A program made the position numbers and the translations under genes. Positions 24,387 through 51,181 of a stretch of DNA of 64,000 bases are shown piece after piece. Under the pieces are notes generated by a model that saw only the letters and a program-made list of their open reading frames with translations, searched no databases and was not told where the DNA came from. Origin of the DNA: Lepidodermella squamata. Its lineage: Eukaryota > Animalia > Gastrotricha. Every line of letters begins with the position of its first letter. Positions within the stretch are counted from its first letter, which is position 1. The stretch covers positions 1,860,001 through 1,924,000 of the forward strand of contig JBLDXI010000002.1 of assembly GCA_047495785.1 (NCBI GenBank), written 5' to 3'.

Positions 24387-26338
24387 TTATCGCTTTTTGG
24401 CCAGGGAATATCCGTTCTCAGATTCGATACAGACGCTGCTAGCGCTGTCGTAGGTTTCATCGCCGCAGCAAGCTAACCGACCATCTTCAGAGACTGAGTA
24501 GACCCCGTTGCAGCATATCTGAAAAATCAGAAAAATTGAATGAGAAATTTAAAAAAATAAAAAAATTCGATTCCAATAATCGATTTTACAAATCAGTGAT
24601 TTTCAGGGATCCATGACTTAAGGGTACGAGTTTGCTAAAAAAATGCAGAGTTGGAACCTCAATATTAATTGTACCCATCGCGAAAATGATAATCGATAAC
24701 CAATAGCCAATTTTGGGGAATTATGAGAAAATCGATTCCTCATTGACGAAACACCATAAAATTGCTGAAGAATTGTCAATTTTTTACCTGTCCTGGCGTC
24801 CGTTTGTAGATGAATGTCCCGCAGCAGAAAATTGGCGCGTCATGCTGCTTGCAAATAGCCGCCGCGAATTGTTGAAAAGAGTGCATTTCGACCTGAGTTC
24901 CTCCTGCTGCAACAGCGATTTCTTCACTTTTCCGTTTATCAGCAGCGAAATTGTCACGAGCTCGAGGCATCATCAAAGCCACGTCAATAACTGGAGAAGG
25001 AATTGACACTGCATCAGCTTCAGCCGGGTTCAATGTCGGAATAGGCGTGGGTGTGGTTGTTGTTGTAGTCGGCGTAGTGGCCTCGGTAGATGTCGATGTT
25101 TGCTCCGTGGTCGTTGTGGTGGTTGTTTCTGGGGTAGTCGTTGTTGTCGTAGAAACAGTCGTAGTCGTGGTTGGTTCAGTAGTAGTAGTTGTTGTCTCGA
25201 TTTCAACCAAAAGCGGGCTAGTCTGCTCGTCCATTGCCTGCTGCTCGATTTTCAGCGGCTTCTTAACCGGCGCATTTTGATCTCGATTGGCTCGTTGGAT
25301 AATCACGTTGTCAACGCAATAAGAATTTTGAATATTAAACGCCTTTTCCCCACAACAGAAAATCCACGGTAATTTTTGCTCCAAGGCCACGAATTTTCTC
25401 TGGTTACATCTAACTAAACGATGGCCATTTTTAATGATAGGCGTCATCAGGATTTCAGGCGGGTAACTCGTATCTTCAAAACTCGGGAAAGTCGGCTGAT
25501 TTTCGGGTTCTTCTTGTTCCTCAATAATATCAGGCTCCGGCACTGTTTTCCGGACCGGTGGTATGATGGTGAAATGATTTTGCAGCAACTGGATGCAATC
25601 ATTGAAGCGGCTCTCCACATTTTCAACCGTTGTAGTCGTCGCAATTGTTGTTGACGTGCTAGTCGTAGGCGGTGTAGTTGATAAAATTTTCGAATGCCGA
25701 TAAATTGGCCTCATTCCCATCGGCATTGGTTTTATTTGATGGAGGGAGAAAAATCGTTTATCACTACCGTCGAAGCCGTAGTTTTGCGATTCTTGCGGCG
25801 GATGGTAAATCGGTTGCCGGTTCTCGAATCGATTGTGCCGGAAATTACCCGAAAAAGTCGGGAAAAATGACTCAGAATCTTGAAAATTCGCTTGAAATTC
25901 ATCCAACTCAGACATTGAAAACGGCCTAGAAATGACTTTTTGACTCTGAAATGTCGGAATTTCTGTCGTCGTCGTAGTCGTTTGAACTTTCATGAATCGT
26001 TTGTTGCCAGTTGGAAGGACTTGGAACACCTTGTTTTTTGCTAAATCGATATGAGGTGACGTTTTCGGTATCAATTTTCGATGGCCCATCAATTGCGGGT
26101 TCTGATAGACAAAATTTGGCTGCATTGGACCGCGTTTAGGCTGTTGTTCGAACTCGTCCATGTAATCGATATGGCGCTGTTGTTCCGGGGTGAGAAAGGC
26201 GCGTGGGTCGAGCTGCGGTGTCATCGGCAGTAGTGGAAAAATGTCGCGCCATTGCTTCGGGTACGAAGGCTGAGGCAATTTCACCGCTTGAACGGACGTA
26301 CCAAATAAAACCAAAATTAATCCGCAAAATGTTTTCAT
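24387..26338 (-). CDS. Secreted Cys-Cys repeat (galaxin-like) / Thr-rich protein A
   Basis: Signal peptide, Q/P-rich N-terminus, poly-Thr tracts, CCG modules. Exons 26338-24788 and 24518-24387 (ICCNGVYS...LACCGDETYD...KKR*). Confidence 0.85.
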
Positions 26339-27596
26339 TTTATGATTTGACCAGTAAAAAACCGAAATTAATTTTATTACTACTCGTAAAAATTAAGGTA
26401 TTCCTCAATTGAGGTGTTACGGCCTAATTTGTGTCAAATTTCGTGACCAAGTTAATTAGCCAGCGGTTTCGTGGCTTTATTTCACACCTGAATTAATGAC
26501 GCCATTATTCGGAGTCGAAAAAACCATTTCATATTTCTTTACCAGCTTTTTTCGCTATTTTTATTGTAGCCGAAGGTGTAGAATTTTATAGCTGCGTTAA
26601 CAGCTTCGGTATTGGTGACAAAAATATATCTGAATCACGTTGTATACACAGCTTTCTGTATTTTCTTCGAAAACTCGACGTGTAACATGGAAAAAAGTTT
26701 TATCAATGGCGACAAGGCCGAAAGAAATAATTTCGGTATGAAAAAGATAAATAAAAATGCAAAATTAAAAAAAAATGGCTTTGCTAATTATTGGTTTTAA
26801 ATACTCTTCACCTACTTCACTTCATATTTCGGCCAGGTCGTGCATTACTAATTGGTAAGGAGGCTTCAATTTGAGTCACCGACCTCTGTCTATTGGGCAC
26901 GATCCAGCTGGATGTGAAGATCGCACTCACGCGCCGCATTTGTTAATTATACCCTGGCGCGCTAGAGGCGTTAAGGCGGATAGGTAGGGTGACAAGAATC
27001 CGGAGACTTTTAAGGCAGTTTTAAGGCTGCGCGCGAACATGACACGCAACTTGGCCGCAATAATTCGGGTCAAATTTGATGACACGCGATATGAGCTTCC
27101 AGGTTAACACATTTCGATTGTTTTACATAATTTAAGGAAGTTCAAATTTTTATAAAAATTGCGATATTTTTTATTGAAATTCAGCGTTTATCTTCTGCTC
27201 CTCTTCGGGGCCGCAAATGAGAAATAATTTTTCCGCATCTCACACCTTTTTACAGCACCAACTTTGTTCGATGATTCATCGTCGAATCGCTCTTTATAAT
27301 TCGAAACTGAATTTCCGCTGAATTTGAAATTTCAGTCTGCCATTTCAAAATCGTTGCATCATTTTATTTATTAAAAAAGTTTGATAATAAAGGAAACAAA
27401 GTGCTATACATTCAGAGCCATAAAAGATTCGCAGCCGCTGGATAGTACGAAATTGAAATTTAAGGAGGCTACTAAAGCTAAGAATTTCGACAGTGAATTC
27501 CAGCATCCAAGCATCTTGACTACGCAATCCAAGCAAATCTCTATAGTCCATCACACGATTGATTGATTTTACTGACACCCGGTATGAAATTCTCGT

Positions 27597-30500
27597 TTAC
27601 ACCTGAGAGACCTGATTGAATTCCGAGCAAACCTGAAAAATCATTAAAAACTATTTGAAAAAATCGCGGAATTAATTGAAAAGGATCAACCTGAGTCGAA
27701 GGGTCGAAGCTTTCCCGGCCACAACAAGCGAGTTGTTTGCTTGACGACGAATAAAAGCGTCCTTGGCAACATAACTGACCCTGAGCTTTCCGATGCGCTG
27801 TCCCGCCGCAGCAGAATCTACCTGTTGGGCAGGGAATTTTCGGTTTTTTAGTCGTTCGAATGATATAACTGCGGGCAGTTTGAAGCGCGTGATGTCTCAG
27901 CTGTCGGTTGAAAATTGGATCCGACCAAAATTGGCCGATATTAAATGGTAGCGATTCGTCGCCAGATACCGAGAACCCACGATTTCTCGCATCCTGGCCA
28001 ACCTTGTCGTTTTCCGAGGAAGATGTCGAAGAGGTTCGTTCGGAAAATTCACCGCCACTTGCCAGCATTTGAACCGGTGACTGTAGAGTATCAGCAGCTA
28101 CCTCACTGTGGCTGATCAAAGTTGGCGCCGTAGTGTCCCGAGAGCAGGTGGTCATTAAATCTTGCAGGGTAGATCCACAGCAGACGTAGAAAATAGGCGC
28201 GGCTTTTGTTTGCCAGTAAGTGTCGTTGCATTTCAAAGTGAAAACCTAGGAAAAATACCGATATTACAGGTAAGTAATCCAATTTTTTTTAATTTGAAAA
28301 ACTGAATTTGAAAATTTCAAATTTCAAATCTTTTTTAAACATTTTATACATTTATCAAACATTTAAATTTTAAAACTCAAATTTTTAATTAGCTTTAAAT
28401 TTGAAATTTTGAAATTTTGAAAATTTTGATTTTAAAAAATTCTGAATGTCTGAAATTAGGACTGGTGACTAGTGATTTTAAGGAATTTTCTTCCTATGGT
28501 TGAAGTTAACTTACGCCTCCTGAACGGCTGGGTAGCGGTATTAAATGATCATTTTTCAAGTTTTCAGGCGCTTCGCCATCGTTTGAGAATGGCGGCTGGT
28601 CCATAGGCTCGTTTTCATTAACAGCACCCTCATTATTGAACGAACTTGAACTTTTTTCCAGCCGTTGCCACTCACTGGAGGGTTGGCTAATTTTCCGCCG
28701 ACTCGAACGCGGCACAACACCAGATTTTGCTGAATTTTTATTCTCCATATCTTGCTTGTTCCCAGCCGTCTCATTGATCAACTTCAACTCTGCCGCTAAA
28801 TCTTCGTCGATATAGTGAACATGGGGTGGTTCGCTGTGAGAATACTGAACAGTACTCCTGACGATTTCAGGTGTTGTAGTTAGAAATTCAGCTCCTTCAA
28901 TCGCGACTTCGGCGGTTATTGCCCGACCCATCATCGATTTCATCGGCATAACTGTCGTGATTTCCGGCAAACTACTGCGATCGACTAAATTCCCACGGAG
29001 GCAGATAAATTTCTTCGGGTCGAATGCGCTATTTCCACAGCAAAATACAAAAAGACGCTAAAAAATTCGAAAATAAATTGAAAAATTGATTTAAATTCGA
29101 ATAGGACTTACGTCATCTTTAATGACAAACGACCGCTTATCCGGGCATTGATAGATGATTTTTCCTTTAATGTTGCTCACGATAGAAGGCATGGTACTGT
29201 CGTCCTCGAATTTAGGCGGGCTAGGTGTTTGCAGGCGTGGCTTTTCGATAACCTCGCCACCGATGCATGACGCTAAATGCGTATTGTAAGCCACATTTCC
29301 GCAGCATCGAGCATCCTCATTCTATCAAAAAATCTCATTAAAGGCGGTTGGAAAAATTCGGGGAAATGTTATACCCTATCAGCCGGGACCATGAAGCGGC
29401 GATTTCCGCATTTAGCCACTTGCCGCCCGTCGGGTAAAATGTCGCCAAGTTCGGGTCGAATTTGAGATTCAGGCGGCGGGGGTGGCGGTCCGAATGCTCC
29501 CTCGAGGGTGGATAAATTGTTAGATTTGCCAACATCGATGACTACGACTGTATTGTTGATGCAGCTGGCCTCGAAAATTCCGAACATTTTATCAAGGCAA
29601 CAAGCGACCTCAGAAATCTGTGAAAATTAAAAAAAATTAAAATTTGAAAATTTGAAAATATTGAATTATTTTTGAAAATTGACCTTATTTTCTGGAACAG
29701 CAAATTTTTTATCCTCGCATTTAACCAATCGAAGGCCATCGGGTAGAATTTGATCGAGTTCAACCTGGCTAGTCGCGCCATTACCGGCCAATAGGCCTAA
29801 TTTTGTCGTGACCATACTAAGGCCTCCAATACCATTAGCCGGGTAATTCGGAATGTCATTGCTCGGCGTTTGCGTGATAGGAGCCTCGGTGGTGACATTC
29901 AAATAATTCATAACCTCACCACTCCGGCAATACGATTGTCGGATACTGAACGCAACTTGGCCGCAACACGCAGTTTCAGGAACCTTTTCTTCTGGAACCA
30001 CAAACCTCCTACCACGACAGCTTATCTCACGCTGATTGCCGGGTAATACGCTCAGCAACTCCGGGGTAGGTTCCTTCTCAATAGCTGAATTTTGAGGCTT
30101 TGAAGTCGCTTTGTTGGAAGGATACAGCGAAACTACATTCCCACCGACGCATCTCGACGCTTTGATGTAGAAAATTTTGTTGCTACAACACGCGAGCTCG
30201 GAGAGTTTTAGCAGCGAGACAATAACCGTCTTATCGAGACATTTCACCATTTGTCGGCTGCCGTTCGGGTCGCCCATTGGTACGGGTTTCGACACGCCGT
30301 CTTGGTTTATTTGAGACTCGGTAACAGGCGGCGGCAGGTTATGAGTGCCGATTATCGAGGCTGGAACTTGGGCGACGTAATTTTCGGTTGTTGGAGGTAA
30401 TGGCGTGGTTGTTGTTGTTGTTGTTGTTCTCCGAACCCCGGACGGCAGAGGCTTAACTTCACCATCAACACACCACGATTCGACACGGTTGAACAGCTTG

Positions 30501-32625
30501 TCTCCGCAACATTTTACCTCAACCAACTAAAATTGATGAAAGTTTGATATTTTAAATTACGATTAAAACTCGTTTTTTCTCACCCTTGAGGCAATGACTG
30601 AGAAAGTTCGGTTTAGGCATTTGACTAATTGCCGACCATCTAAGCCTTTCGCTGAGATAATTTCGGGTAAATAAACCCCAGCCGGAGTTGTCATAGGCGC
30701 TTCAGTCGTGATGGAACCAGCCCCGTAAAGCGGAACCACCCGCCCATCGACACACCTCTGCTCGTTTTCATTCATTACAGCGCGACCGCAGCACCACGTC
30801 GATGGAATATTACCAATTGGAATGTAGGTCATGACGTTATGACAGTGCACGGGTAACACGCCGTTTGACAGTGCGCGGCCGGAAATTTCGGGCCGGAAGG
30901 CGCCTGTGCCGGGTTCAGGTGACTTGGTTGTAGTAGTTGGTGGCCGGGAATTTTTGAAAATTCGACCCTCGTCGCAAGTCGCTTCGTTAACATTGAACGG
31001 AAATTCAGCGCAACACATAATGCGCCATAGCTTTAAATAAAAATTTACGATAAAAAAATAATAAAATTTAATAAAATAAAATTCCACCTTAATAACTGGG
31101 ACATGGTAAGATTTGAAAGCGCACTGAATCGCCTGGCGTCCATTTGCAGTCGGTCCGCCGATAATTTGGGGCTTGTAAGCAGTTCCAGGAGGTGGCAACG
31201 TCGTTGTCAGTAAGGAAGCTTCTGTGGTCGAGATAGGTAGAGCCTCTGAGTTAACTGGGTGATGTTGGGGCACAGGGAGTTGGCGCCATTGGGCTCCATC
31301 AACCACCTCACTTTGCACGCAAGCGTTCAGACGAGTATTGAACGCCTTATTAACGCAACAAGCAACGTCGGGCATCTGAAATATTAATTTTCAAATTTAA
31401 AAAATTAAGTTTGAAATTTTTGAAATTTTTGAAAATTTAAATTTTCAAGTACTTATGGGATTCAAAATTTTAAAATTGTTGAAATTTTTATTACCTTTTC
31501 AATAGCGATGTAAAACGTTTTAGTTCCACATTTGACAGGTTGACGGCCATTTTTATTAGGCGGACCGAGAATTTTCGGCAGGTAAGGTCCGTCCCTAGAC
31601 GATTGAGATGCTGATTGCTGCTGAGGCTCGACCTCCATTTCGTCTTGATTCTTCTGACCCAACTTGGGTTGGTTAATGAACGATAGAGGGGCTGATTGTT
31701 GCTGAGGCACGATTGGCATGTCATCCTGGTTATTCTGGCCCAGTTTCTGTTGGTTGATAAACGATAAAGGGGCTGCTGATTGCTGCTGACGCTCCACTTC
31801 CATGTCATCTTGATTATTCTGGATTAACCTCTGTTGGTTAAGCTGGGTGAAAGGTCCTGATGGGTCGTTTGGCAGTAAGAAAGGGGACGGCTGGGCTATT
31901 ACATGAGGCATTGTAGTTCTCACACTTTTCGTACTCGGTTTCGGGGGTACCAACGTCACGACTTCATTGCCCGTCGGTAGGGTGGCTGGTAATTGCGGCT
32001 TCATACCAGGTAAATTCATGTAACCGTACGTCATCGGCAAAAACTGCTCCTGGGCTCCTCGCCTGTGCTCGTACGGGTTCAAGGGCGCCACAGTAAAGGG
32101 AGCTTCACCAACGACTTTGCGTGAAAAAGCAGGGTTCTGAGGTGGCTGCTGGCTCTGGAATAACCCGCCGAATCCCGAAAATTGACCAGGCATAATCGGG
32201 AATTGGTTCGGGGGCTGGGTCTGAGGTTGAGGCTGGGTCGCGCCAATATTTGGCTGGTTGCCAGCAAGCGCTTTCATGAAAAGACTTTCCAGCGACAAAC
32301 CGCCGTAATCTGGCTCCGGATTTTCGGACTTTTGATGCTGCATTAGCCCTGAGAACGGGTTGCCGAAATTGAACCAAGATGGGCTGGCATCAAATTGTTG
32401 CGGATTTTGCTGGTAAAACATGTTTTGATCCGGCCGCTGGGCAGGTTTCCAATTGTTGTTTGCCTGCCTTGGTTTAAGGAGTAACAATGGGTGCCGTTGG
32501 TGTTGGTCACCCAGCTTTGGGTGACCCGGGTGACCTGGGTTGCGGTACATCAGCAACGGCATAGGGTGGCTCAAATCGATCGCCGAACATGGCGCTATAA
32601 GGAAAGCGAGCAGGGCAAAAAACAT
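27597..32625 (-). CDS. Secreted Cys-Cys repeat (galaxin-like) protein B, 9 exons
   Basis: Exons 32625-31495, 31375-31088, 31030-30584, 30526-29684, 29617-29375, 29321-29112, 29057-28515, 28245-27691, 27632-27597, all phase 0. About 9 modules of G-x-Q-x-V-x-C..CC..F....C..G.V. Confidence 0.85.
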
Positions 32626-33461
32626 GATAACTGCTGTTTCATGCGCTGCAATTTCAATGATAAAAATTGAAAAGATGCGTTATACTAAAAGATGGCTTTA
32701 ATTTCAGTTAATAAAATCGCACGAGTCCTAACTGCCGAAGTTTTTCCGCAACAACAATTGATGATGACGACGACTCACAGCAGTAGGTAGGTAAGAAGTT
32801 ATTCCATGAAAACTTTGGCCACGCATTGTTTGATGCGTTGGTTTCGCGGTTTTGCCGCGCGCGACGCCTCGCGCGTTTTGTGAAGTGAATTTTTTTTATT
32901 GCGACGCTCGCGCGCGCAAAACGCGGCTTCATTTTTGGTGGCCAATATTACAATATTAAGCTGGAGTTATTTAACTCAATGAGAGCTTCCTTAACGCGCG
33001 CGCTCGCGCTCGCGCATTTCTTTAATCGTCTGTAACACGGAATTTAACAGGATTTTCTGCGCCGCGACGCGCCAAGCGTTTTCAACGTACTCTAATAATT
33101 TTGATGACAAATGTAAAACGGCTGTAAATTGCTACGTTTAACCGTATCTCTTTGTCGCTAGATTAGGATCAAAACAATATCCGCCGGATGTTGTGGTACA
33201 GCATACATTAGATCATTTATGTCTGGAATATTTAAATTAAAGACTGCAAAAATTCTCACGCTGTTTCAATTCAGGGTGTTTCAAATTTTTTTATTACGAA
33301 AATGTTTTCTCAAATCAAACACATATCTTGGCACCATAAATTTTTAGTTCAATACGTAATTTTTTGATCAATTTTTTTTACAGTACAGTCACAATTCACG
33401 CATGGAATATATACAACATATATTTTCTATATAAATTTTTTTCCGGTCTTTTCAGGTGATT

Positions 33462-36400
33462 TTACCGCCTCCGCAAGACGACGTAGCTTGATTCGGAGCA
33501 TTCCTGTAAAATAAAAAATAATTTATTTATTTTAAAATCCACAAAAATTTCAACTCACGTGAGATTTTGAGTCGAACGGAATTGGCCCGCAGCAGCTCAT
33601 TTCGCCGCTTTCAGACGCGCTGTAATTACCATCGCAGCACACCTGTCCGGGTTGTTTCTCATAGACCTGATTACCGCAGCAGAAAACTTGCGAATTTTCC
33701 GCGTCACAGGTTACAGTTTTCGGCCGAGTAACAATAACCCCTTGTGATTCATCCAGGGCAGCTAACTCATTTTCCGACCTTTCCCTCGCGACAATTATCG
33801 CCTCGGCTGTATTTTCAGTAATGTTCGGGTTCACCATATCGTTAAGCTGAGGTTGAGGCGTAATTTCACCACCGTGACTCAAAGCCCTCGCGACGCCTTT
33901 AGGTACCGCAATATCACCCTCTTCAAATGCGACCAATTTAGGAGCAACAGGTTGAAGGCCCAAGTCACATTGGGTCAGTTCGACTCGATTAAGAATATCG
34001 CCGCAGCATAAGAAGGCCGAAGTTGGTTCGCCCGTTTGCCATGTTTGATCGCCGCATTGAAGCGTGTAGGTACCCTTCTCACTACCCACCTTGCCCTGAT
34101 TCCTTAACTGATCTTGGAAACTGCGGATTAAATTTATTAAAGCTGTTCGGGAAAGGTTCGGATTTTGGAGTAGCTCGAACAAAGCAGAGTTTCCCTCTTG
34201 CCTAATTTCCTGGGGCCGAATTACGGTAGCTTCAGGCTGGGTTGGCTCAACTATTTTAGGGGCTTCTTCCTCAGTTTTCGCCTCAAAATCGTTTTCCATC
34301 GATTTCGATTTAGCTTCTTCCTCATCAACTGATTCCAAAAGCTTCCGCCTTAATTCTTCCCGGCCGATTTCTAGCAACCTCGCCTCGTTGATAACAGCAG
34401 CTAACGACTCAGCTTGTTTGATTGAAGGGGCCATTAACGATTCAGTATTCGACGTCATTTCCAATTCTGAAGATAAATTTTCGTAAATTTCAGTCGAAGT
34501 TGTCGCTTGAGTTGTAGTGGTTGTAGTAGTGGTGGTTGAGGTTGTTGTTGAAGTTGTAGACGAAGGGCTCAATTTAGGGAGGTTTAGGCCACCCGATGAT
34601 ACCGAATCGCGCCAAACGTGTTCATCCACAATATGGCCATCAAGGCATGCCAAATTCGCCTTATTAAACGCTCGTGTTCCACAGCATCGAATATTAGGCA
34701 ACTAAAATAAAACGTCCAGCTTAATAAATTCTCCATTCAGATAAAATATTTACCTTAATTTGCGTTGAAACGAATTTTTTGTCTCCGCATTTTACTAGGC
34801 GGCGGTTTTCAGGCAGCAGCAATCCTTCGATGAGTTCCGGATCAGTACTGTCATCATTTCGGCGTCCGAATTCGGAAACAGCCTGTTCGGCGATAGCTTT
34901 TAAATCCGTATTTTGTCGCTGGTTATCTTCCTCTTTTTCATTATGGTTGTCAACTTGTTGTTGCCGCCGCAGGGCTTCTTGAATTTGCTGTTGCCAGGAC
35001 GGTTTCAATTGGCCAGGGCGTGGGAGAGGTTCCGAGGTTGGGTTCAGCTGAGAGCTATCATCTGATACATTTTTCGAAAAAATTTCCTCGTTTTTAACAG
35101 GTTCAAAAACAGGCTAGAAAAAATGGAGGAATATTACAGAAAAATTTGCAAAATTCAAGTTACGAACCTTGGGTGTTGTAGTCGATGTCGTTTGGTCCGG
35201 AGTATTCGACCTGGTTTGAACCTCGTTAGGGAAGTTGCTGAACTTCGGTAATGAAGCTGAAGTCGTAGTAGTAGGAGCAAACGTCGACTTTGAAAGAAAA
35301 AACACATGAAAAGTCCCTCAATTCTGAAAATTCTATGAAAACTTTATTTCTTAGGTTTGAGATTAGGAAAAAATGGAATCAGGAGGTGCGTGAAAAAAAC
35401 TAGAGGTTTTATCGTAACAAATAGAAGGAAACTAGCATTTTTTCTAATAAGTTTGAAAACTAACTAATTTGGCTACATTGGCGGATCTTTCTATCGGGTT
35501 GTATTGGGGTTGTTGCTGCTGAACTTGCGCCGCTATCTGCTGCGAATAAGGATCGAAGTTCAGAGGTATCTCTTGATTAGTTTGCATCATTTGCTGCGGC
35601 TCAGTCTGACGAGGAGGTTCAGGATTAAAATTTGCCTGTAAAAATAATACCCGAAATATGAATAGCGATAAAAGGAATGTGAAGTTTCCGAACCTGAGTC
35701 GGCTGGAGCTGGACCATAACATTCGGCAACCGAGGTGAGCCAGAAGGTGGTAGACCGAAATTTTGCGGTTGATTTTGTTGTAGAAGCTATTTAAATTGTT
35801 AATAAAATTTATTCAAATTTTTTCGTAATATTTACCTGCTGCTGCTGCATGGGGTAAGGATTTTGCATCGGATTCTGTTGAGATCTGCTCATATCAAACT
35901 GAGGCTGTGGTTGTTTTTGCATGGGAACCGGTTGGCCGTAAAATTGGTAACCAGAATTTCCGAAATTTCCATTAAATTGATTCCCATTCGGATCCAACAA
36001 CTGATTCGGCGGCATCATTTGACCCTGATCAGTCGGATTCATCTGACTAGGCTGAACGGGTCCTTCTTGCTGCTGAGGATCAATCGGCATCAGCGGCTGA
36101 AATTGAGGCTGAGGCGACTGAGGCTGGTATAAATAATTAGCCGGCTGGTAAAACATGGGCTGATTTTGACCAGGCGGCGGCGGAGGTAAATTCGGCGTGT
36201 AAAAGCCTCGATTTTGCTGCGGCAAAGCTCGACGCGGCGGCCACGGCGCGTAAACTGGCGCGTTTTGATAATAACCAGCTGGCTCCCTATTATCCGCCTC
36301 ATTTTGCATGACCATCTGAGCACCAGGGGGTGGCATCACGTAATTACCCTGGGCGTATTGAGGGTGATAGGGCGGCGCGGCATAAACGCGGTGAGGTGAT

Positions 36401-36708
36401 GGCAGGTATTGCCGGTTGAATTGCGGGGGTCTACCCGGGCCAGCTGCAAAGGCCGGGTATAGCGGGGCCGATTTCCTGAGATGGTGCCCGGCGACACCTG
36501 GGTAGGGTGCCGCACTAAGGGCCCTAGCCGCAGGGTGCCACCGCTGGTGATGAGAGCGGTGATTAAGAGCTTGTTGGCGCCTTTGCGGCGCCGATTGCCG
36601 GTAAGAATTTTTCGATCCTGAAACTTTCGACCGAGAATTACTCCCACCTGCTGATGATATTGCATCAGGTAGGGTAGCGAAAAATATCACGAAAATTCCT
36701 AGCTTCAT
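33462..36708 (-). CDS. Secreted Cys-Cys repeat (galaxin-like) protein C
   Basis: Signal peptide, Q/P/Y-rich exon 36708-35836, small exons 35786-35694, 35635-35465, 35287-~35168, ~35060-34754, then 34701-33559 and 33503-33462. Same C-terminal FCCG..Y...GQVCC.G.YS...CCG..FD block as genes A and B. One junction is ambiguous. Confidence 0.8.
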
Positions 36709-37597
36709 TACTATCTAAAAAGACAAATAATAAAAAGGAGCATCATAGCTTCCGGTAATGTCTGCTCTGAGATTTTTAAGGTGATACAATCGCCGCAGAG
36801 ATAGTAAATAATTTTTTTTTCTGCGTTTTATTTAGTGACATGCCGCCAGTATCAATAGTAGATTTTTTCGCTGCTGCAAAGACATTTCGAGTCAGAATGT
36901 GTTGAACCTTTGTTATAAGATATACGAGAGTGAAAAATAAACCGCCGTTGCCTTTGTTATGTCTGAAAATTTCCGCAATACTACGGAAAGTGGCCATACA
37001 AGTGTGCGTGAAATGCTTGTTGAAAACAGCATCAAGAACTATCTTGTAATTAACAAATTAATTTTAAAGGGGTGTTTTCGTTTTATAGAGAGACGCATAG
37101 GCCAAACAATAAAATATCTTAAATTAATAAAAATTATATATTGTGTAAATAAGGGCAATAATACTTCAAGTGTGCCGCGTATAATTTCTAGTAAATAACA
37201 ACAATATAGCCCGACCGGTGGTGATTTGAGCGCGCGTGTTAACGCGCAACGCGAGCGGGAAACTTCTTCTTCTTATATACGATGAAGCGAAAACGTAAAA
37301 ACAAGCTAACAACATCAGTCATCGCTGATGTGACGCGCATTTATTATACCAAAATTTTCGTTTTTATGTCGCCACCTGTCCGGTTGTTTTGTGGCGGATT
37401 TATTTGAATTGGCAATATAGCTACCTTAAACCGCGGCGAGATTATACATTATTATACGCATTGGGACTACTTTTTATTGCCCTTACTTCAAAAACCCGTT
37501 TGCTGTAAAAGGTGTTTGTCGCTATTGCTATAACAAAAATAAAAAATTACATTAGACTTTATCAGATTTTATTCAGATAAAAACGCAACAAAATTCA

Positions 37598-38652
37598 TCA
37601 AGGAACAGCTACTTGAATTTTGATTTTCCGAGTAATTCTCGGCCGAACTTCAAAGCTGCCACACCGGCCGACAATTTGTTGAACGAGCTGCGTTGTCCCA
37701 AACTCAGCGTTAACAGACATATCGATTGTTTCGAATTTTTCGAAAATTTCCTTAGAAACAAGCGACCAGTTGAAACCAGTTTTCGAGCTCAATCCGAGTT
37801 GTTTCGAAAATTCGCTCTTCAAAGCATCACCGCGGGTTGAGTTGTTTTGAATTCCGATTAGTAGAGTGAAATTACATGTTACTAGGTCATCGCCGGATGA
37901 ATTTTCGCAGGTCACCACGGTTTCCCAGTTGTCCTTGGGCTCGGCACATATCGGTGGCGAGACTTTATTCCTTACCAGCCGATTCGATACCCTTTCCGTT
38001 ATAGCAAGGTCTGATTTTGAGAGGTTGTGTACGATGAATTTGTGAGTTCCTCGGTAGTCGAAATAGCGGCAAGATCCGCGGCCGAAGCCGTAGTCGTGGC
38101 TTTGATTCATCGCCAGAGCTGCTCCTCTCCCGTCGAGAACGACCAAACTCTCGAAGAAATTCGATCGAAACGAAATTGTCCCATCTTCGTTGTCTATAGC
38201 CTGGTACCGCTCGTAGAGACTGCCGATTGCGCAACACCTGAGGTGATTTTTCATCGACCAAACCGACCAGCCAGTGTTTTCGCAACTCGTGCTGAGATAC
38301 CGGCCGATGAAATGGGCTGATCCGATTAGGAAAGTTTTCGTCACATTTCGAACTGGGATTATTAGGAAGCGTTCGTAGTTGCTGGGTGGGCCTAGCTGGG
38401 CGTTGACGTAGCCGCCGCAGCCTGACCTCACGCCCTCGCAGGACATTCGTAGGAAAACTCCGCGATGCTTCGCAGATTCGATGGCTACAACTCGCATTTC
38501 AGTTGAAAACGTGTCAGACGGAGGATCAGGCCGGCCATCTGTATAGAAAGAATGCAATTATTTTTTCGTAATTATGGGATAAATATTATTCAAAGACCTA
38601 TTGAGTTGACGACAGACTGAAGTAGGAGAAAGACCAACTTAAGGTGCTTCAT
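37598..38652 (-). CDS. Secreted protein: fascin-like beta-trefoil domain plus C-terminal aerolysin/ETX-like beta domain (candidate pore-forming lectin), copy 1, intact
   Basis: Exon 1 38652-38598 (MKHLKLVFLLLQSVVNSI signal-like), exon 2 38538-37598. Repeats VAIESAKHRGVFLRM...VNAQ...ERF / NEDGTISFRS, then WETVVTCENS..TCNFTLLIG..LGLSSKTGFNWS..VQQIVGRCG. The gene is well supported; the domain calls are by eye. Confidence 0.7.
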
Positions 38653-38911
38653 TTTAAGAATTTCTTCTTATCTAACCATGGACATGAAATTCACATGAAA
38701 ATTCACTATTAGAGACTGACTGCTGACAAGAAAAGAAGTAGAAGAAGGCCATGGGCGTCAGATTGTAAACTGATTCGTCCATCAGCTGCTTGGAGGTAAA
38801 GTAAACAAAATAAATACAGCACCGTTTATTTCAACGGGACACAACCTTTCGAAACAGGACCCTGCCAAGACGGAAAGAATCTCATTTATCTATCATTTAT
38901 TTATTGATCTG

Positions 38912-39003
38912 GTAAGAAACAGAATTTCGGCACCGATATGCTCCTTGCCCACGGATGACTGGGAAACTGCGGTGACCAGTGAAAATTCATCTGACGAAGA
39001 CCC
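38912..39003 (+). pseudogene. Inverted ~90 bp fragment of the adjacent trefoil/toxin-like exon
   Basis: Degenerate reverse-complement copy of ~37883-37975 (PPICAEPKDNWETVVTCENSSGDDL); counterpart at ~53326-53419 in unit 2. Confidence 0.8.
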
Positions 39004-39198
39004 GGCGCAAATAAATTGACTGCTTGCATTCAGTTCTCCAGTAAAATAGTTGTGTTGCGGCTATTTTGTCTTGTTAGCTGACCGGAACCGTGACAGAAAT
39101 GAAAAAGAAGACAAAGAAATTAAAATTCAGAATAAAAAACACTGCAGTGGCTGCGCCACAGCCACAATCGGAGGTGTTGTTGATCCTAGCGTCCGTGG

Positions 39199-39233
39199 CA
39201 TAGAGAACGGAGTGATCACTCCGTTCCTCTATG
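39199..39233. mobile_element. 35-bp hairpin micro-element with 8-bp target-site duplication
   Basis: catagagaacggagtga|tcactccgttcctctatg (near-perfect palindrome) flanked by gtccgtgg at 39191-39198 and 39234-39241. Confidence 0.75.
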
Positions 39234-41041
39234 GTCCGTGGTTACGCTAATCGCAAACGCAGATATTGGCTCACTTGAATTTTGCGTAAGTTAGGGATGA
39301 CACGTGGTACGCATAGGCCGGGTACGAAAAGATCCGGATCATCCTTGAGGCCTGATGAATTTTGACAACTCAGATGAAAGCCACAGATGACAGAGGTTAC
39401 GGGTGACCCCTACTTGATTTTTCATGGGCCCGTAAAAATCACTCTGCTAGAAAAACCCCGTTTTTATTTCAAGGTACCGAATCAGCAAAGACATCTATTC
39501 AGCAGTCCTGGCCTGTTTTTCATCTCAATTCTTAATAAGTTCTTATTCGAAAATGCTGGAATCTCTGAAGACAACGAAGTTCTAAACGCACAGCCGGCAA
39601 CTTAATGTCTGTCTCCTACTTAGTACTCATATTCTTATATTCTCGAGGAGCAGTAGAAAGTTGTTCAGGTTACTTCTTTCATGCACGAAGAAATGCAGAA
39701 GATTTCTGTCAAATGTGAAGTCCTACATCTATTTCGCCTGGATAATTTTAGCAGGCTGAAATCGCCTGAGACACCCATCATGTTTTCCATAATCATAGCA
39801 GATATATGGCACAACACGGATGACGGAGCACGTAGATCAAACAAGAGCTGCCCCTTGGCAAGCAAGGCAAAATCGATCTCTTGATTCACAACGTGTTCCC
39901 TTATTGAGTGGCTTTAAGGGCAACAGGGAAGATGTAGATGAGATTGGCGGCCACAGCTCCCTCAGAAATCACGCCCGTCATTCTGTGTCCTCAGCAAAAC
40001 ACAGCATTAAAATATAGTGTAACCTAAGGTAAGGTAACCTAATTCTGCATAAAAAATTGCCACTTTTTCGATCGCCTGGCATTCCATAACCATGAGGTTC
40101 TATGGGCTCAAATTTTGACCATGAGCAGTCAGAACTCATTCAAGTAAGCCCACAAATCTCATGAGGCAATTCCTGACCGTTAGGGAGCCAACGTTGCTAA
40201 AAGTCAAAAAAAAGATCGAGAGGGCCAGGAACAATGCGCAATCTCATGGTCTGCGAAACTATCTAAACCTGATATTTAGGCTTTTAATCATTGGTTTGAC
40301 AGCTGCATTCATTCTCATAGGGCCCTATCAACATTTAAACTAAAATGATTTTAGATCATGCATTGAATTCACAAAATTGGAACTCTCTGGTTTCTCGCAC
40401 TTCATCTCTCGTACTGGAGTTATTTAGGCATCTCACCTGAAAACCGGCCTCTTTGAAACAACTGCACTAACGTATCTTCCCTAATGTGAGAAAAGTGAAC
40501 AAAAGACGATGACGGGAGAAAATCTCTCTTTTGCATTCTTTGTATGCTAAACACTCTGCATGATGCATGGACTTGATGCAGGCATAGATGCAGGTTGATC
40601 ATGAGTCCCATGTAGCATGAAAGCTGTCAGTTCAATGTAACTACAAAGCTTACGCAAGAACACAACTCTCTCGTTTTTCCCGCTACATCCCGCTAAGAAG
40701 GCATCTCACCTGAAAACCTGATGTGGTCCAGTTTGATCATGAGTTCCATGTATAATGAACGAAAACGCGAAAAACTAGAAACGAAGAAAAAGCCTTGGGC
40801 TCTTGGGCTGCGTACTCATCGTGGTCGATTTTCAAATTTGAAATCCCCGCCGAAGTCAATTCCCGCTTGATTTTGTCAAATAATATAACATAATTATTAA
40901 TTTAAATTAAAAAATGTACATTTTCATGAGAATTCGAAATTTATCAAGTTGTCGATGAATTTTCCGAGGTCGGAAAACATCTCCGGTGTTAAAACACCTC
41001 CGATTCATTTATTTTCATCAGGCGGTGAAATGAACCAACAT

Positions 41042-44000
41042 TTACAAAATTGCACCGGCTGCTAAGAGATTGTGTACGGTTTTCTGTTTGTCTTCATCCG
41101 ACACATCGTCATCGCAATTCTGGGCTATAAGCAAAGCTGTCCATCCCGTCGACGGCACTCTGTAATTGACATCAGCCCCGAGCTCACGAATCAGCAAGTC
41201 GACAACAGCATGGCGGCCTTTGAAGGCTGCACCCATGAGAACAGTACGCCATTTTTCAGGTGGAGGATCAAACGAGTTTCCCAGTCTCATTGCTATTTTA
41301 GGCGAAAAGTCCAAAGCATTGATATCTGCTGGAAACTGCGAAGTTAGAAGTCTCACAATATGGATGTGGCCCCAGTAAGCAGAGACATGTAAAGGCGTGG
41401 TTCCATCTTCAGCTTCTGCATTAACGTCGCAGTTGAACTCTCCTGCAAGCATTCTGACGATTTCCTCGTGCCCTTTTCGAGCAGCGGTGTGCAGCGGCGT
41501 CCAGCCATCACTCCCAGGGGCACTTACGTCGCATTTGATCTCCTCCGCAAGCATCCTTACGATTTCCGTGTGTCCATTTAGGGCAGCCAAGTGCAAAGGT
41601 GTAAGGCCATCTTTATTGGGAGCATTAACATCGCACTGAAACTCACCTGCAAGCATTCGGACGACTATCGCATGTCCAGTTAGAGCAGCAATGTGCAAAG
41701 GTGAGATGCTATGCTCCATCGCGCGAGTGAAGTGGCAGTGGAATTCCCCTGCAAGCATTTTGACGATTTCTGCATGTCCCCTTTGAGCAGCGACGTGCAA
41801 CGGCGTTAAGCCATTCTTGCTGGAGGCATTAACGTCGCACTTAAACTCTCCTGCAAGCATTCTGACGACCTCCGCTTGTTCAAACAAAGTAGCAATGTGC
41901 AGAGGTGTCCAGCCAGCCTCATTGGGGGCATTCACGTCGCAGTTGAACTCACCTGCAAGCATTTTGATGATTTCTGTGTGTCCATTCTTAGCAGCGATGT
42001 GCAAAGATGCTTGTCCATCTTTATCGGGAGCATTGGTGTCGCAGTGGAACTGTCCTGCAAGCAGTTTGACGATTTCCGCGTGTCCATTTTCAGTGGCCAT
42101 GTGCAAAGGTGTATGGCCGTCGTTATTGGAAGCATTAATGTCGCACTTGAACTCTCCTGCAAGCATTTTGACGATATCCGCCTGTCCATTTACAGCAGCA
42201 ATGTGCAAAGGCGTATTGCAATCCTTCCCAGAGGCATTTACGTTGCAGTTGATCTGTTCTGCAAGCGATCTGACGACATCCGCGCGTCCAATCTGAGCTG
42301 CGATGTGCAACGGTGTCCAGCCATCCCTTCCAGAGGCATTAACGTCGCCCTTGAACTCTCCCGCAAGCACTTTGATGATATCCGCCTGTCCATTTATGGC
42401 AGCCATGTGCAAAGGTGTATTGTCATCCTTTCCAGTGGCATTAACGTCGCATGTGAACTCCTCCGCAAGCATCCTTACGATTTCCGCGTGTCCAATCTGA
42501 GCAGCAATGTGCAAAGGTGTATATCCATCCTCCCCAGAGGCATTGACGTCGCAGTTAACATTTCTTGCTAGAACTTCCACTACATCCAGGGTGCCGTTCA
42601 GCGCAGCGAGATGCAAGGGTGTTAATCCTGTCGCAGTTCTAGTGTCCACTTTGATGTATTCGTCTGCGAGAAATTCAACCACTTCGGCCTGACCCTCTAA
42701 AGCTGCGACATGCAATAAATTCATGCCGCGTTCATCCTGCATTTGCACGTTTGCCTTCATCGCACCCGCTAGTAGTCCAACAACCTTAGCGTGGCCGTTC
42801 TTGACTGCCGCCAGAATTGGGGTCTCGTCATTGTTTGTTGCAATATCGATGCTTTCATTTGAAACCGTTCCCAGGGTTTTGACCGTACGCAGATTGCCGA
42901 CGCTCGCAGCTATGTAAATGGGAGTTCTCCCTAATAGGTCCTTAGACAGCGGATTAGCATTGAACTTCTTTACCAATAGTTTTGCGATCTCATCATGTCC
43001 TTCTTGCGCAGCTAGAAACAACGGGGTCACACCTTCGCTGTTCTCGCAGTTAACGTTTATTTTCAAAGCTTCGGCTGATAACAGCGATTCGATTTCTCCG
43101 ATTTCGTTCTGTCTGATGAGGCGAAAAAGGAACTATAAATGCAATGATAGCAAGCTCATTTATGATCAAGGAAAACTTCGCCTTACTTTTTCTCCGGGGC
43201 TAAGGTCCGGCATTGCAAGATTTTCATCGGAAGCTGTTTTCATGAGCTGATTGGCGATTTGGGCTTCTGTTATAGAATTATCCGTTGCGTTAAGCAAAGC
43301 CTGCGGAGAGCCGCGCCTCGAGCTGATTTTTTCACGAATCATCCCCATGATTGCGTTTCGGAATTTAAATGAATAACCGCGGGAATCATCAAAGTCTTTT
43401 GGATGATTGCTGTATATGTAAAGAGGGTGAATCGTACGAAAGCATATATTGCTTGAAACTTACAAAATGATTGCCAAAGTAGAGTCAAACTGAAAATTAT
43501 ATTGCGTAAAAAACTTTATTTACCAGCCAGAGTAATAGCTTACAGGCATGCAGAAATTTGCCAACTCGAACAAAGTGACACCTAAAGACCACCAGTCGCT
43601 CGCGTTCGAGTGATCCTTCTTTGCAAATAGTTCAGGAGCCTTGTAAAGCTGATTATTGTATTCCAATTTTTCAACTGGTTGCTGCTTGTGTCTTTGTGAT
43701 CATTGGTACATGCATATCGTTAGCGACGCGCCAAAACAACCACTTTACTATTTATAGCTTTTTTATGGAAAGTACGTTCGACTCTTGAACGTAAATTCAA
43801 ATTACGATGAGTACGATCAGTGCTCAAAAAGCCGAACGTACTCCTTCTTTACGTTCGGCTCGTCAAAGTACGATCGAATGAGTCATCAAAGTGGTTGTTT
43901 TGGCGCGTCGCTAACGATATCGTATCAAATCCCTCTTTAAAATCGATCATACCTTTCGTAAACTTTCGCCAACCCAAACCCTCCAAGTTTGACAGTGGTG

Positions 44001-46778
44001 CTGTTATGGAGAAAAATATTCTTGGGCTCTATTGCGCGATGGAGAATTCCGCTTGCGTGCAGCTTTTCCACCGCAGAAGCAAGCTGTCGTGACCAATCCA
44101 TCAACAGACATTCGGGAATAGGTCCAGCTGATTTTTTCTTGTAATCTTTCAAATTTCCTTCCGAGCAGTATTCCATTACCAAATTATAAATTGATCCATG
44201 CTCTTTAACAATAAATAAAGAAGAAATTATGCGACTATTAAGTCAAACGTGGCTCTTGAGTTATCCTAATTAAGGCGGGAGATAATTTGCAGTTTGATGT
44301 CATGTGGAACGGAGAGTAGTGACATAACTTGCACTCAAAGCACAGTAGTACGATAAGCAAAAAGTAAATCCGACTCACCATCGAATGATCCGAATACCGA
44401 AAGAATGTTAGGGTGTAATATATCCACGAGTTTAAGATTCTATAGGTTAAGACCTCTTTGTACATGCATATTTAATAAAAAACGGGACTTTACCTCGTCT
44501 CGGCTTAGTTTGATTAATCGGTCTGCAAAATTAGGATCACTGTCATTAGTACGAGAAATTAGGCTTAGATTGAAAGCCTTGACAACATAATGGTTCACGT
44601 CTTTGTATCGCCTGCATAGCATTGCCGAGCCGAAGGTACCTCTTCCGAGCTCCTTTTCACGCTTGAACTCGCGGATTGAGGAAAAAATCAACTTCTTTGC
44701 TTCTGCTACGGGCACTTCGGTCATCTTCCCTTGTCTAATGAAACGACTGCCCAGCAGATCAACAGCCGTAGCTCGATTAGAAGGGTCTTTTACGAGCATC
44801 GAGAGAACAAAGCAATAATATTCTTCTGATCGTTCTTTGTCGAATGGTTTCGGTTCGCTCCTAAGAAAGGATAGCGATCATTTATGACAAGATTTATGAA
44901 GCGTTTGTTTTGAGCGGTGTGATATATGGGGACCGAAATGTCCGATGCGGCATTCCAAACTTACCCTGTGATGTCACCTGCGCTATCAAACTGAAAACAG
45001 TAAAGTTTCTTTCAAGAGCGCAATCGCAATAGTGCTGACTTACTGGCAAGTAGAAATTCGCTAGTTCGAAGAAAGTAACCCCGAGTGACCAACAGTCGCT
45101 AGCCTGGGAATTTGGCACATTACGAAACGTTTCAGGTGCCCTGTACAATGATGTGCCAAGACCAATCAGTGAGATACTCGCTGAACTGCGATATAAAGGT
45201 CAAGCTCCTCAGATACTCTTATTTCTTATTGCATGAAAGCTTACTCGCTTTTAGGGGGTCTAGCCAGACCAAAGTCGCCAAGTTTGACAGTTTTCTCATC
45301 GTCGCACAAAAATATGTTCTTCGGCTTGATGTCGCGATGCAGTGCGCCGATGCTGTGAACCTTTTCGACAGCCGACACCAATTGACAGGCCCAGTTTTGC
45401 AAGACACACTCAGGTATTATCGCTTGGGCCTCTTTTTTTCGCTTAATGTAGTCTGACAAATCGCCGTTCGAACAATGTTCCGTAATCATATAATATATTT
45501 CATTTCCTTTCTGCCAATGGTCGAGCGTTTCAATCGGCTCATCCTTCAGCTGTTCTGTAAGAACAAATTTACTGTAAATTATGCACTGTCTTCTAATTTT
45601 TCGAAAAAATGCACTCTACACAGGTTTTGCGGTATTACGCTATCAGAGAATTTCAGCAAATGACAGGTTGGGCAGTTTTTAAATGGAATTCCGCCATGGG
45701 CAGCCGTCATCGCGAATTCTCATCCGTCTCGACAAGATTCCGGTCACGGATAAGACATTAGACCCATCCATAGCGGAATCACACCGCCATCACACTTGCG
45801 TGTATGATGTACCGTCACTTGGGGTAATCTGGGTCAGTGGGGCTATTCGGGGCTATGAAAACGGGAGAAGGAGCATGGCTCAAAAACTACCCGGCCGTTA
45901 GCAGTGAAATTTTGCACGGAGTTAGGTGTAGCCCCATCCGTGGGGCTATTCGGAATCCTGGTTCCATTGGAATCAGGACCTTCTGAAACATGTAAAAATG
46001 CAAAGAAATCAGGGGGTAATTTTTTTTCGCCGTCCGGATAGCCCCAACTGACGGTATGAAATGCACTGCATGGATTGGTAAGCCATGGCGGAATTGACAC
46101 CAATTAGTCCTTGGAGCTTATACCCATTGCCCATGGTAGAATTCCATTCTAACCAGCCCAATCTGTCATTGTCTGGAATCCCTGTATGGCCTGCGACATA
46201 TCGTTGTCGTCATTGAATAACTCGGATTTAGGCTTGTTTACATCCGTTTCAAGGTCACGGAATGGGTCACGGGTGACAAGTAAAAAGCGGCTTTTTTAAC
46301 GTGATGAAGAGGCAATAACAAAAGACATTTTACTTACCTATCACCTATCACCGTGAAATGGATGTAAACAAGCCTAAATCCGGGTTATTCAACGACGACA
46401 ACGATATATGGCAAGCTTTTTTAATTGCTGCCATCATTTACCTGTAAATGCGCCACGGACAGCGACAATGTTTTCATGCTTCAAGCTCTCAAGTAACTTG
46501 TGCTAATGAAAAAATATCAATAAGCAAATGCAATCTAAGAAGCCCATACGGTTATGTTGCCGTACCTCTTGGCAGCTCAATTTTATGAGTTTCATTGCGA
46601 AAGTCGCATCGTCGCCTTTTCCGTAAGTCATCAGAATCATGTTCAGGTTGACAGCCTTAACCACGTAGTCAGCTAAATCCCCATCTTTCCGCCGACATAG
46701 CCATACAAAACCAAAAGCTCCTTTTCCCAGGTGTTGAATTCTTTCGAATTCAGATATAGAGGTAAATTCAGCCGCCAT
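41042..46778 (-). CDS. Tandem kinase-pseudokinase-ankyrin repeat protein (NEK-like kinases), copy 1, intact, about 1305 aa
   Basis: 12 exons: 46778-46566, 46502-46442, 45554-45245, 45185-45044, 44990-44965, 44860-44494, 44439-44379, 44202-43953, 43691-43544, 43489-43464, 43409-43187, 43132-41042; all GT-AG and frame-consistent (3918 nt). Kinase 1 has GKGAFG/VVK/HRDIKPKN/DFG/APE; kinase 2 has HRAIEPKN/GFG; about 19 ankyrin repeats follow. Confidence 0.88.
43718..43916. mobile_element. Intronic MITE (cgtt...aacg termini, ATAT/TA target)
   Basis: TIR cgttagcgacgcgccaaaacaaccacttt, flanked by atat on both sides; empty site in unit 2 at ~57374. Confidence 0.88.
45644..46183. mobile_element. Older TIR element in kinase intron 2, present in both units
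   Basis: Imperfect inverted ends tgacaggttgggcag..aatggaattccgccatgggc / gcccatggtagaattccattct..gcccaatctgtca; homologue at ~59116-60190. TSD unclear. Confidence 0.65.
46202..46403. mobile_element. Intronic MITE (cgtt...aacg termini, ATAT/TA target)
   Basis: About 50 bp TIR cgttgtcgtcattgaataactcggatttaggcttgtttacatcc, atat flanks; absent at ~60217 in unit 2. Confidence 0.88.
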
Positions 46779-46842
46779 GTCGGGTAAATGACGTGTAGCT
46801 TGCATGAATCTAAAAACCTGCAACTAAAAAGTGTGCTATTAA

Positions 46843-50614: not shown

Positions 50615-51181
50615 AATGTGATCATAATTTATCCATTTTCTGAAGATGCGCTTGCAAATCTTCCGCAGATGTCGTTCCGGCTGGCATCTCCGTAGCAGGC
50701 ACAGCGCAAAATTTTTGAATGTTTGTCAAACAAAATCGCCTCCCCGAGTGATTTTGTTTGAAGTCATTATCAACAAACTTTTCAAACATTTTCTTTCAAA
50801 CACGTTAATTTAGACGGGCAAACATGTTTGAAAGCCGTGTTGGTCCCAACAATGTTTGAACCAAAAGTTTGAAAGTGTAAATGCAATGTTTGAAGCCGTT
50901 GTTTGGCAAACAATGTTTGAGGTCCATGTTTGGTAAACATGTTTGCCCGTTTATACGAGCCTTTACAGCAATTGGATTTATTTGAATTGGCGATAGCTAC
51001 CTTAAACCGCGGCGAGATAATACATTATTATACTCATTGGGAATTGGGACTACTTTTTATTGCCCTTACTTCAAAAACCCGTTTGCTATAAAAGGTGTTT
51101 GTCGCTATTGCTATAACAAAAATAAAAAAATTACATTGGACATTATCAGATTTTATTAAGATAAAAACGCAACAAAATTCA

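Follow-up and report, generated by a model that had tools for sequence, protein, structure and literature searches.

A predicted kinase-pseudokinase-ankyrin gene at a tandemly duplicated locus in an animal genome

Plant tandem kinase proteins, including Rpg1, Yr15/WTK1, Sr62, and WTK4, commonly combine a kinase with a pseudokinase, some having arisen by duplication. These proteins have been described only in plants and cereals, have a demonstrated function in resistance, and carry kinases that derive from the receptor-like or IRAK-Pelle clade. A 64,000-nucleotide stretch of contig JBLDXI010000002.1 from Lepidodermella squamata (positions 1,860,001 to 1,924,000; here called the window) contains a gene of comparable layout in a host that appears to be a bilaterian animal. 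This gene (copy A; minus strand, window positions 46778-41042) is predicted to encode a kinase (kinase 1), a pseudokinase (kinase 2), and a long ankyrin array, and a paralog (copy B) lies in the same window. As in the plant proteins, two tandem kinase folds are placed in one soluble polypeptide to which a further domain can be added; unlike the gene described here, the plant proteins have no ankyrin array reported in the literature searched. The product of copy A is probably a soluble cytosolic Ser/Thr kinase joined to a dead kinase-fold domain, a short linker, and a solenoid of 19 ankyrin repeats, all encoded by a lineage-specific gene.

Several described systems share part of this architecture. 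RIPK4 and ANKK1 are soluble animal Ser/Thr kinases followed by a C-terminal array of 10-11 ankyrin repeats, which is the same order of kinase and then ankyrin; however, their single kinase is of the RIP/TKL type, a pseudokinase is lacking, and the array has ~10 repeats, compared with 19 here. In RNase L, an animal protein, ligand sensing by the combined ankyrin array and pseudokinase turns on the neighboring enzyme domain, but the domain order is reversed, the output is a nuclease, and the array has 9 repeats; no sequence relationship between RNase L and the kinase-pseudokinase-ankyrin protein was detected. JAK and GCN2 contain an intramolecular pseudokinase that regulates the adjacent active kinase, as is proposed below for kinase 2, but in these conserved housekeeping or signaling genes the pseudokinase is N-terminal to the kinase and the accessory domains are others, without ankyrin. 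The Nek-ankyrin proteins of Giardia have an N-terminal NEK-type kinase, often dead, followed by a fast-changing array of 1-26 repeats; they differ in belonging to a protist, in having only one kinase domain, and in carrying repeats of the TALM subclass. A Giardia-type array was rejected for the present gene, as TALM occurs 0 times and TPLH occurs 11 times in copy A. The literature search returned no animal kinase-pseudokinase-ankyrin protein, and what surfaced were the plant tandem kinase proteins, obscurin/SPEG, RNase L, and the Giardia Neks. The gene is a new arrangement of well-known parts.

Copy A consists of 12 exons separated by 11 introns, all of the GT-AG type, with splice sites that were placed by hand on the minus-strand sequence. 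The joined coding sequence of 3918 nt comprises 1305 codons plus a stop codon, and there is no stop inside the frame. Eight of the introns are 53-63 nt long, and the other three measure 887, 176, and 261 nt. In the list of open reading frames (ORFs) over 40-48 kb, this region is represented by one 674-residue ankyrin ORF (41042-43066, minus strand) and by short kinase-like ORFs scattered upstream on the same strand. The original prediction had proposed that such fragments hide a single gene whose 12 exons splice in frame into a protein of ~1305 residues, with recurring 61-nt exons (exons 2 and 7) and 26-nt micro-exons (exons 5 and 10); the open frame and the GT-AG introns bear this out, and both exon pairs are present in copy A. 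Exon 1 ends after the alphaC Glu region at a phase-0 donor and can be aligned to residues 6-51 of a NEK2-like kinase (P0001). Matches to the Pfam Pkinase profile on the exon pieces run in colinear profile order in both kinases. The junction of the two kinases lies inside exon 6, where profile positions 1-41 match residues 65-105 of the exon, and both domains are joined by this single continuous exon, which gives two kinase folds in one polypeptide, as in the plant tandem kinase proteins. No Pfam family matched exon 11, which has a ratio of nonsynonymous to synonymous substitution rates (dN/dS) of 0.20 between the paralogs.

The link between the kinase half and the ankyrin array depends on intron 11 (54 nt), and it could be argued that the locus gives two products or isoforms, a kinase-pseudokinase ending in or after exon 11 and a separate ankyrin protein, with the 1305-residue protein being an artifact. 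Retention of this intron would end the copy A frame after 6 codons, and no other intron is as poorly conserved between copy A and copy B (73%). The frame is nonetheless kept across it in both copies, with GT-AG boundaries and lengths of 54 and 52 nt, and the exon 12 acceptor (tttatag/TTC) that keeps the copy A frame open is the same in the paralog. The ankyrin exon, which has a stop at its acceptor, contains no Met before its residue 125; a separate ankyrin protein would therefore find no start codon for 124 residues, and the first repeats lie upstream of that Met. No AATAAA signal was noted between exons 11 and 12, while one is found past the final stop in copy B as in copy A. Two separate products are, on this evidence, very unlikely.

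The two kinase domains differ in the residues needed for catalysis. Kinase 1 has the G-loop, the beta-3 Lys, the HRD..N and DFG motifs, and APE, all as in an active member of PF00069, and from its motifs is predicted to be catalytically competent. Kinase 2 retains the fold, the ATP-site Lys, and the G-loop but lacks the catalytic Asp, the catalytic-loop Lys, and the Mg-binding Asp. These are the changes (HRD to HRA, K to E, and DFG to GFG) that had been put forward at the outset, together with an intact set of motifs in kinase 1, and the motif comparison (Table 1) agrees on both. A pseudokinase is defined as a kinase fold without at least one of the beta-3 Lys, the catalytic Asp, and the DFG Asp (PMC13519141), and kinase 2 is a pseudokinase by this sequence definition.

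In alignments with the NEK2-like P0001, identity is 31% for residues 11-297, spanning kinase 1, and 29% for kinase 2. Against structures in the PDB, the kinase 1 core scored 54.3 bits with NEK7, 53.2 with PKR, 52.4 with RAD53, and 50.4 with Chk1; because the last three are within 4 bits of NEK7, the label "NEK-like" is weakly supported and is a lead rather than a classification. The nearest structures to the kinase 2 core were GCN2 and the TYK2 pseudokinase region, with TYK2/JAK2 among the matches. Membership in the RIP-type (TKL) kinases was considered and rejected, since the Pkinase profile (74 bits) outscored PK_Tyr_Ser-Thr (53 bits), and no RIP kinase was present among the 60 best PDB matches listed for the kinase 1 core. 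The same 60 matches included no IRAK or plant receptor-like kinase. Descent from the plant tandem-kinase lineage was likewise rejected, given the animal host and the solved kinases nearest to kinase 1 named above.

An alignment of the two kinase domains over 272 columns has 48% identity, and five of five introns are at homologous positions with the same phases (0, 1, 2, 0, and 2). Together, the identity and the common intron positions and phases are direct evidence that the pair arose by intragenic duplication of a five-intron kinase unit, in line with the internal duplication originally proposed for the two kinase halves. Since this duplication, the two domains appear to have diverged at similar rates. 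With P0001 as the outgroup, unique changes numbered 17 in kinase 1 and 28 in kinase 2 (p = 0.10), and the apparent rate of kinase 2 is not significantly above that of kinase 1.

The whole locus was duplicated in turn. Self-blastn of the window aligned the blocks 37396-39016 and 41007-46841 with 50974-53431 and 53646-60661, which shows a tandem segmental duplication of the locus, accompanied by turnover of ankyrin repeats. Copy B follows the same plan as copy A, and its splice sites are conserved. The original prediction that both paralogs stay open holds for kinase 2 of copy B, which is open and carries the same HRA, Glu, and GFG; it fails for the copy B gene as a whole, which is frame-broken twice. 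In exon 3 (kinase 1 core, near 58930), a run of A's is one base shorter than in copy A, and conserved kinase sequence carries on past the run in another frame. The ankyrin frame is lost near 54060-54075, where a homogenized repeat array ends and near-identical 68-residue double repeats meet the last unique repeat out of register. One break is in a homopolymer and the other is at a repeat edge, both being sites at which assembly errors are to be expected; copy B is either a young pseudogene or misassembled. The copy B array (54072-55334) is strongly homogenized (matches of 85% by Tandem Repeats Finder, against 70% in copy A), and it contains four 68-residue double repeats that are nearly identical to one another, a sign of either very recent unequal crossing-over or misassembly.

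Other components of the duplicated locus were also noted. Gene X, which was coduplicated upstream (37396-39016 and 50974-53431), contains a 319-residue ORF (37598-38557, minus strand); it had no Pfam or PDB match, and a single-sequence AlphaFold2 model was unusable, with a predicted local distance difference test (pLDDT) score of 32. Its second copy is split by an 842-nt insertion (51591-52432). A 207-nt element (43714-43920) with perfect 33-nt terminal inverted repeats lies in intron 8 of copy A. As this element is absent from the 56-nt counterpart intron of copy B, it looks like a recent insertion resembling a miniature inverted-repeat transposable element. Intron 2 of copy A contains a 228-nt palindromic element (46189-46416) with 67-nt arms that are 90% complementary, which is absent in copy B. 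In both copies, intron 2 also contains an element with the same 21-nt inverted repeats, AATGGAATTCCGCCATGGGCA, at 45682-46148 (467 nt) in copy A and at 59137-60160 (1024 nt) in copy B. The copy B version holds a 207-residue ORF (59277-59900, plus strand) without a Pfam match, and the element is probably a DNA-transposon remnant predating the locus duplication.

The paralogs allow selection on the kinase half to be assessed. The dN/dS was calculated for copy A against copy B by the Nei-Gojobori method with a script, and significance was judged by the Fisher test. Values were 0.45 for kinase 1 (p = 0.003), 0.42 for kinase 2 (p = 0.006), and 0.39 over the 607 codons preceding the ankyrin array (p = 9e-7), with a dS of ~0.13-0.15 in the kinase half; identity between the paralogs is 92.7% in exons and 89.8% in the short introns. 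These ratios show that kinase 1 and kinase 2 have both, as far as can be judged from substitutions, been under purifying selection. The HRA, Glu, and GFG substitutions are identical in both paralogs, and the three inactivating changes are therefore older than the locus duplication. The earlier suggestion that the dead domain is maintained is supported by this one sequence pair, in which the ratio for kinase 2 is close to that for kinase 1, and by the relative-rate count with P0001.

Such constraint would not be expected if the genes were a decaying, functionless young family in which both copies are becoming pseudogenes and the open frame of copy A is a short-lived survival. The two disruptions of the copy B frame, the small inverted-repeat insertions gained in introns 2 and 8 of copy A, and the failure to find an orthologue would all be consistent with decay. 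However, nonsynonymous changes are ~2.5-fold depleted relative to synonymous ones over the 607 codons (p = 9e-7), and the kinase pair is old (48% identity) yet has kept its fold-defining motifs, its five common introns, and an open frame. The breaks in copy B, moreover, fall in a run of A's and at the border of repeats that are nearly identical, places at which misassembly is to be expected. We regard decay of both copies as highly improbable.

Exon 12 has the period, the TPLH..AA..GH-type signature, and the solenoid stacking of ankyrin repeats, according to Pfam, AlphaFold2, and Foldseek. It scored 535 bits with Pfam Ank_2 (2e-164), and its unit is 34 residues, a period of 102 nt. The 17 canonical and 2 degenerate C-terminal repeats counted in copy A make up the ~19 of the original prediction. 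An AlphaFold2 model of the exon alone (mean pLDDT, 76.8) has helix pairs every 34 residues up to residue 599, followed by two low-confidence helix pairs. In a Foldseek search with this model, the 24-repeat membrane-binding domains of AnkB/AnkR came first (AnkB template modeling score, 0.59). The canonical central repeats have a framework near the ankyrin consensus, and variation from repeat to repeat peaks at unit positions 1, 7-9, 12, 17, and 20-21, flanking TPLH and AA. We take these positions to be the usual target-binding face, from ankyrin and DARPin structures; variability there is a generic property of ankyrin repeats and is no evidence for a sensor. Between the copies, the alignable flanks of the ankyrin region have a dS of 0.30-0.36 and its center has one of 0.62, compared with 0.13-0.15 in the kinase half, while dN/dS is 0.31-0.46 throughout; positive selection was not detected at the level of the whole ankyrin region. 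The higher dS of the ankyrin part suggests a mosaic history of the paralogs, in which the kinase half may have undergone gene conversion or the repeats may have turned over.

Searches for relatives of the gene elsewhere recovered only its component domains. An HMMER search with exon 6 against 1.84 billion representative proteins found no orthologue, the single match being the NEK2-like P0001 (36 bits); as this query covers the least conserved parts of the kinases, the blank is weak evidence against distant relatives. The ankyrin exon, searched against 5.8 billion proteins, matched generic ankyrin proteins only, at a best identity of 39-43%, among candidates of at most 1218 residues, a scope that excludes full-length relatives of ~1300 residues. 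Two kinase-bearing ankyrin matches (P0022 and P0105) were rejected, each having one unrelated kinase with an identity of 23-27%. A pattern-seeded scan of Joint Genome Institute (JGI) metagenome contigs with the kinase 2 core returned 66 generic kinases with 31-46% identity over the core, and tblastn with all four protein segments found no locus joining kinase, pseudokinase, and ankyrin. The missing orthologues are weak evidence in themselves, because the source genome is absent from the collections searched. From these results, the kinase-pseudokinase-ankyrin gene would be lineage specific.

The 1305-residue protein has no signal peptide or membrane segment, as judged from hydropathy and the N terminus: the maximum 19-residue Kyte-Doolittle hydropathy is 1.38, and kinase 1 begins at residue 11. 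The protein is accordingly predicted to be cytosolic, and its assignment as a membrane receptor kinase was rejected for want of either feature. With a cytosolic location, the term "receptor" could only, if it applies at all, have the sense of an intracellular sensor. A possible mode of action is that the concave face of the ankyrin solenoid docks one or more protein partners, with the variable residues at the canonical binding positions. Kinase 2, in which the G-loop, the beta-3 Lys, and the alphaC Glu are kept, may still bind nucleotide and may act as a built-in allosteric or dimerization partner by which kinase 1 is held back or set free, a role that pseudokinase domains have in JAKs and RNase L. 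The activation segment of kinase 1 is Ser-rich, and this kinase would then phosphorylate itself or the docked partner.

Several points weigh against this picture of the protein. The exon 11/exon 12 junction and the start site are predictions. The dN/dS values rest on 50-130 substitutions, and the ratios mix constrained and possibly unconstrained history, since the paralog used for comparison is frame-broken. Analogy is the only argument for the roles given here to the pseudokinase and to the ankyrin array. Finally, deep conservation is not demonstrable, as no orthologue was found.

It is possible, though unlikely, that the protein is an immune sensor like the plant tandem-kinase resistance proteins, with the ankyrin array or pseudokinase serving as bait or sensor and kinase 1 triggering defense. 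The order of kinase and then pseudokinase is a common plant tandem-kinase layout, and RNase L demonstrates that ankyrin repeats and a pseudokinase can form an innate immune sensor in animals. The gene appears lineage specific, with no orthologue in very large searches; tandem duplication, repeat numbers of 19 and ~21, and one decaying copy match a birth-and-death pattern; and divergence between the copies is higher for the ankyrin part than for the kinase part (dS of 0.30-0.62 versus 0.13-0.15). However, the ankyrin dN/dS of 0.31-0.46 reveals no positive selection, only two copies are visible in the window and there is no sign of a large family, and fast turnover of consensus-like ankyrin arrays is common in nonimmune proteins. 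Pfam detected no death, TIR, CARD, NACHT, or other immune signaling module in the protein, and no gene with a recognized immune domain adjoins either copy, the only one in the window being a Mab-21 fragment ~23 kb away. The restriction to one lineage, the tandem duplication, and the turnover of repeats would all fit an immune receptor; nothing observed speaks positively for one, and this reading is unlikely to quite unlikely. In its fullest form, an animal lineage would have independently built a cytosolic tandem kinase-pseudokinase sensor, with a fast-turnover ankyrin array for recognition and birth-and-death evolution at a duplicated locus, which we consider quite unlikely; if true, such a sensor would be a functional counterpart of the plant tandem-kinase immune receptors. 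The reading that we favor is a lineage-specific cytosolic kinase that would be targeted by its ankyrin solenoid and regulated by a constrained, dead kinase-fold domain.

Table 1. Features of the kinase-pseudokinase-ankyrin gene (copy A unless noted), kinase motifs, and the duplicated locus
Feature	Position	Strand	Content
Exon 1	46566..46778	-	Start codon, kinase 1 G-loop GKGAFG, beta-3 Lys (VVKA)
Exon 2	46442..46502	-	61 nt, kinase 1 beta4 region; matched by exon 7 in size and phase
Exon 3	45245..45554	-	Kinase 1 core, HRDIKPKN and DFG; Pfam Pkinase 2e-20, profile positions 62-146
Exon 4	45044..45185	-	Kinase 1 activation segment, APE, DxWSLG; Pfam Pkinase positions 158-195
Exon 5	44965..44990	-	26-nt micro-exon FDSAGDITG; counterpart of exon 10
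Exon 6	44494..44860	-	End of kinase 1 C-lobe, short linker, kinase 2 G-loop and beta-3 Lys
Exon 7	44379..44439	-	61 nt, kinase 2
Exon 8	43953..44202	-	Kinase 2 core, HRAIEPKN and GFG; Pfam Pkinase 3e-16, profile positions 73-148
Exon 9	43544..43691	-	Kinase 2 activation segment, APE, DWWSLG; Pfam Pkinase positions 161-195
Exon 10	43464..43489	-	26-nt micro-exon FDSTLAIIF
Exon 11	43187..43409	-	End of kinase 2 C-lobe and linker of ~50 residues
Exon 12	41042..43132	-	Ankyrin solenoid, 17 canonical 34-residue repeats and 2 degenerate C-terminal repeats, stop codon
AATAAA polyadenylation-type signal	41008..41013	-	~30 nt past the copy A stop; read directly
G-loop	Residue 18 (kinase 1)		GKGAFG in kinase 1; GRGTFG in kinase 2
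Beta-3 Lys	Residue 39 (kinase 1)		VVKA in kinase 1; VVKA in kinase 2
Catalytic loop	Residue 164 (kinase 1)		HRDIKPKN in kinase 1; HRAIEPKN in kinase 2
Mg-binding loop	Residue 185 (kinase 1)		DFGLA in kinase 1; GFGLA in kinase 2
APE	Residue 211 (kinase 1)		APE in kinase 1; APE in kinase 2
Subdomain IX			DCWSLG in kinase 1; DWWSLG in kinase 2
Copy B, tandem paralog	53678..60598	-	Same 12-exon plan, ~21 ankyrin repeats
Tandem segmental duplication	37396..46841, repeated 50974-60661		Gene X and kinase-ankyrin gene; self-blastn of window

The remaining genes of the window bear on the identity of the host. A neurobeachin/LRBA orthologue with few, very long exons (9449-23541, plus strand) contains Laminin_G_3, DUF4704, DUF1088, PH-BEACH, BEACH, and WD40 domains. 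Identity of the BEACH exon reaches 70-73% with insect, mollusc, and vertebrate proteins and 62-66% with those of rotifers, nematodes, and flatworms. In the collections searched, the nearest relative of the source genome is seen only as metagenome contigs, with 90% identity in the BEACH exon and 65% in a DESI-type peptidase. The latter corresponds to a DESI/PPPDE-type (Peptidase_C97) gene of 155 residues that is apparently intronless (8126-8590, minus strand), and the fact that its best relative is only 65% identical indicates an animal lineage that is poorly sampled. The Mab-21 fragment (nucleotidyltransferase fold; 17745-18251, minus strand) is nested antisense between the DUF1088 and BEACH exons, and the same nesting is found in related metagenome contigs (L003, 7443-8759). 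A series of genes at 24776-36708 (minus strand) encodes Thr-rich or Pro/Gln-rich proteins that have di-cysteine modules and are probably secreted, and three ORFs there match the galaxin-like repeat family (E values of 1e-7 to 4e-6). This gene content suggests that the host is a bilaterian whose genome is compact and poor in introns, and the animal host first proposed thus finds support in the BEACH exon and in the galaxin-repeat genes. A scan of the window with Rfam gave no matches.

Current work regards tandem kinase-pseudokinase proteins as immune receptors of plants, largely of cereals. Animal pairs, of which JAK and GCN2 are examples, are conserved and of ancient origin, whereas the gene described here appears young and lineage specific. 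Genes of this kind are missed entirely by ORF-based scans. Even if read in the most ordinary way, the gene contributes a kinase architecture absent from the literature searched. With an internally duplicated kinase pair, a dead copy that appears to be under constraint, and a long ankyrin array attached, it may offer a natural system in which to ask how a fresh kinase duplicate turns regulatory and whether animals use this layout for recognition.

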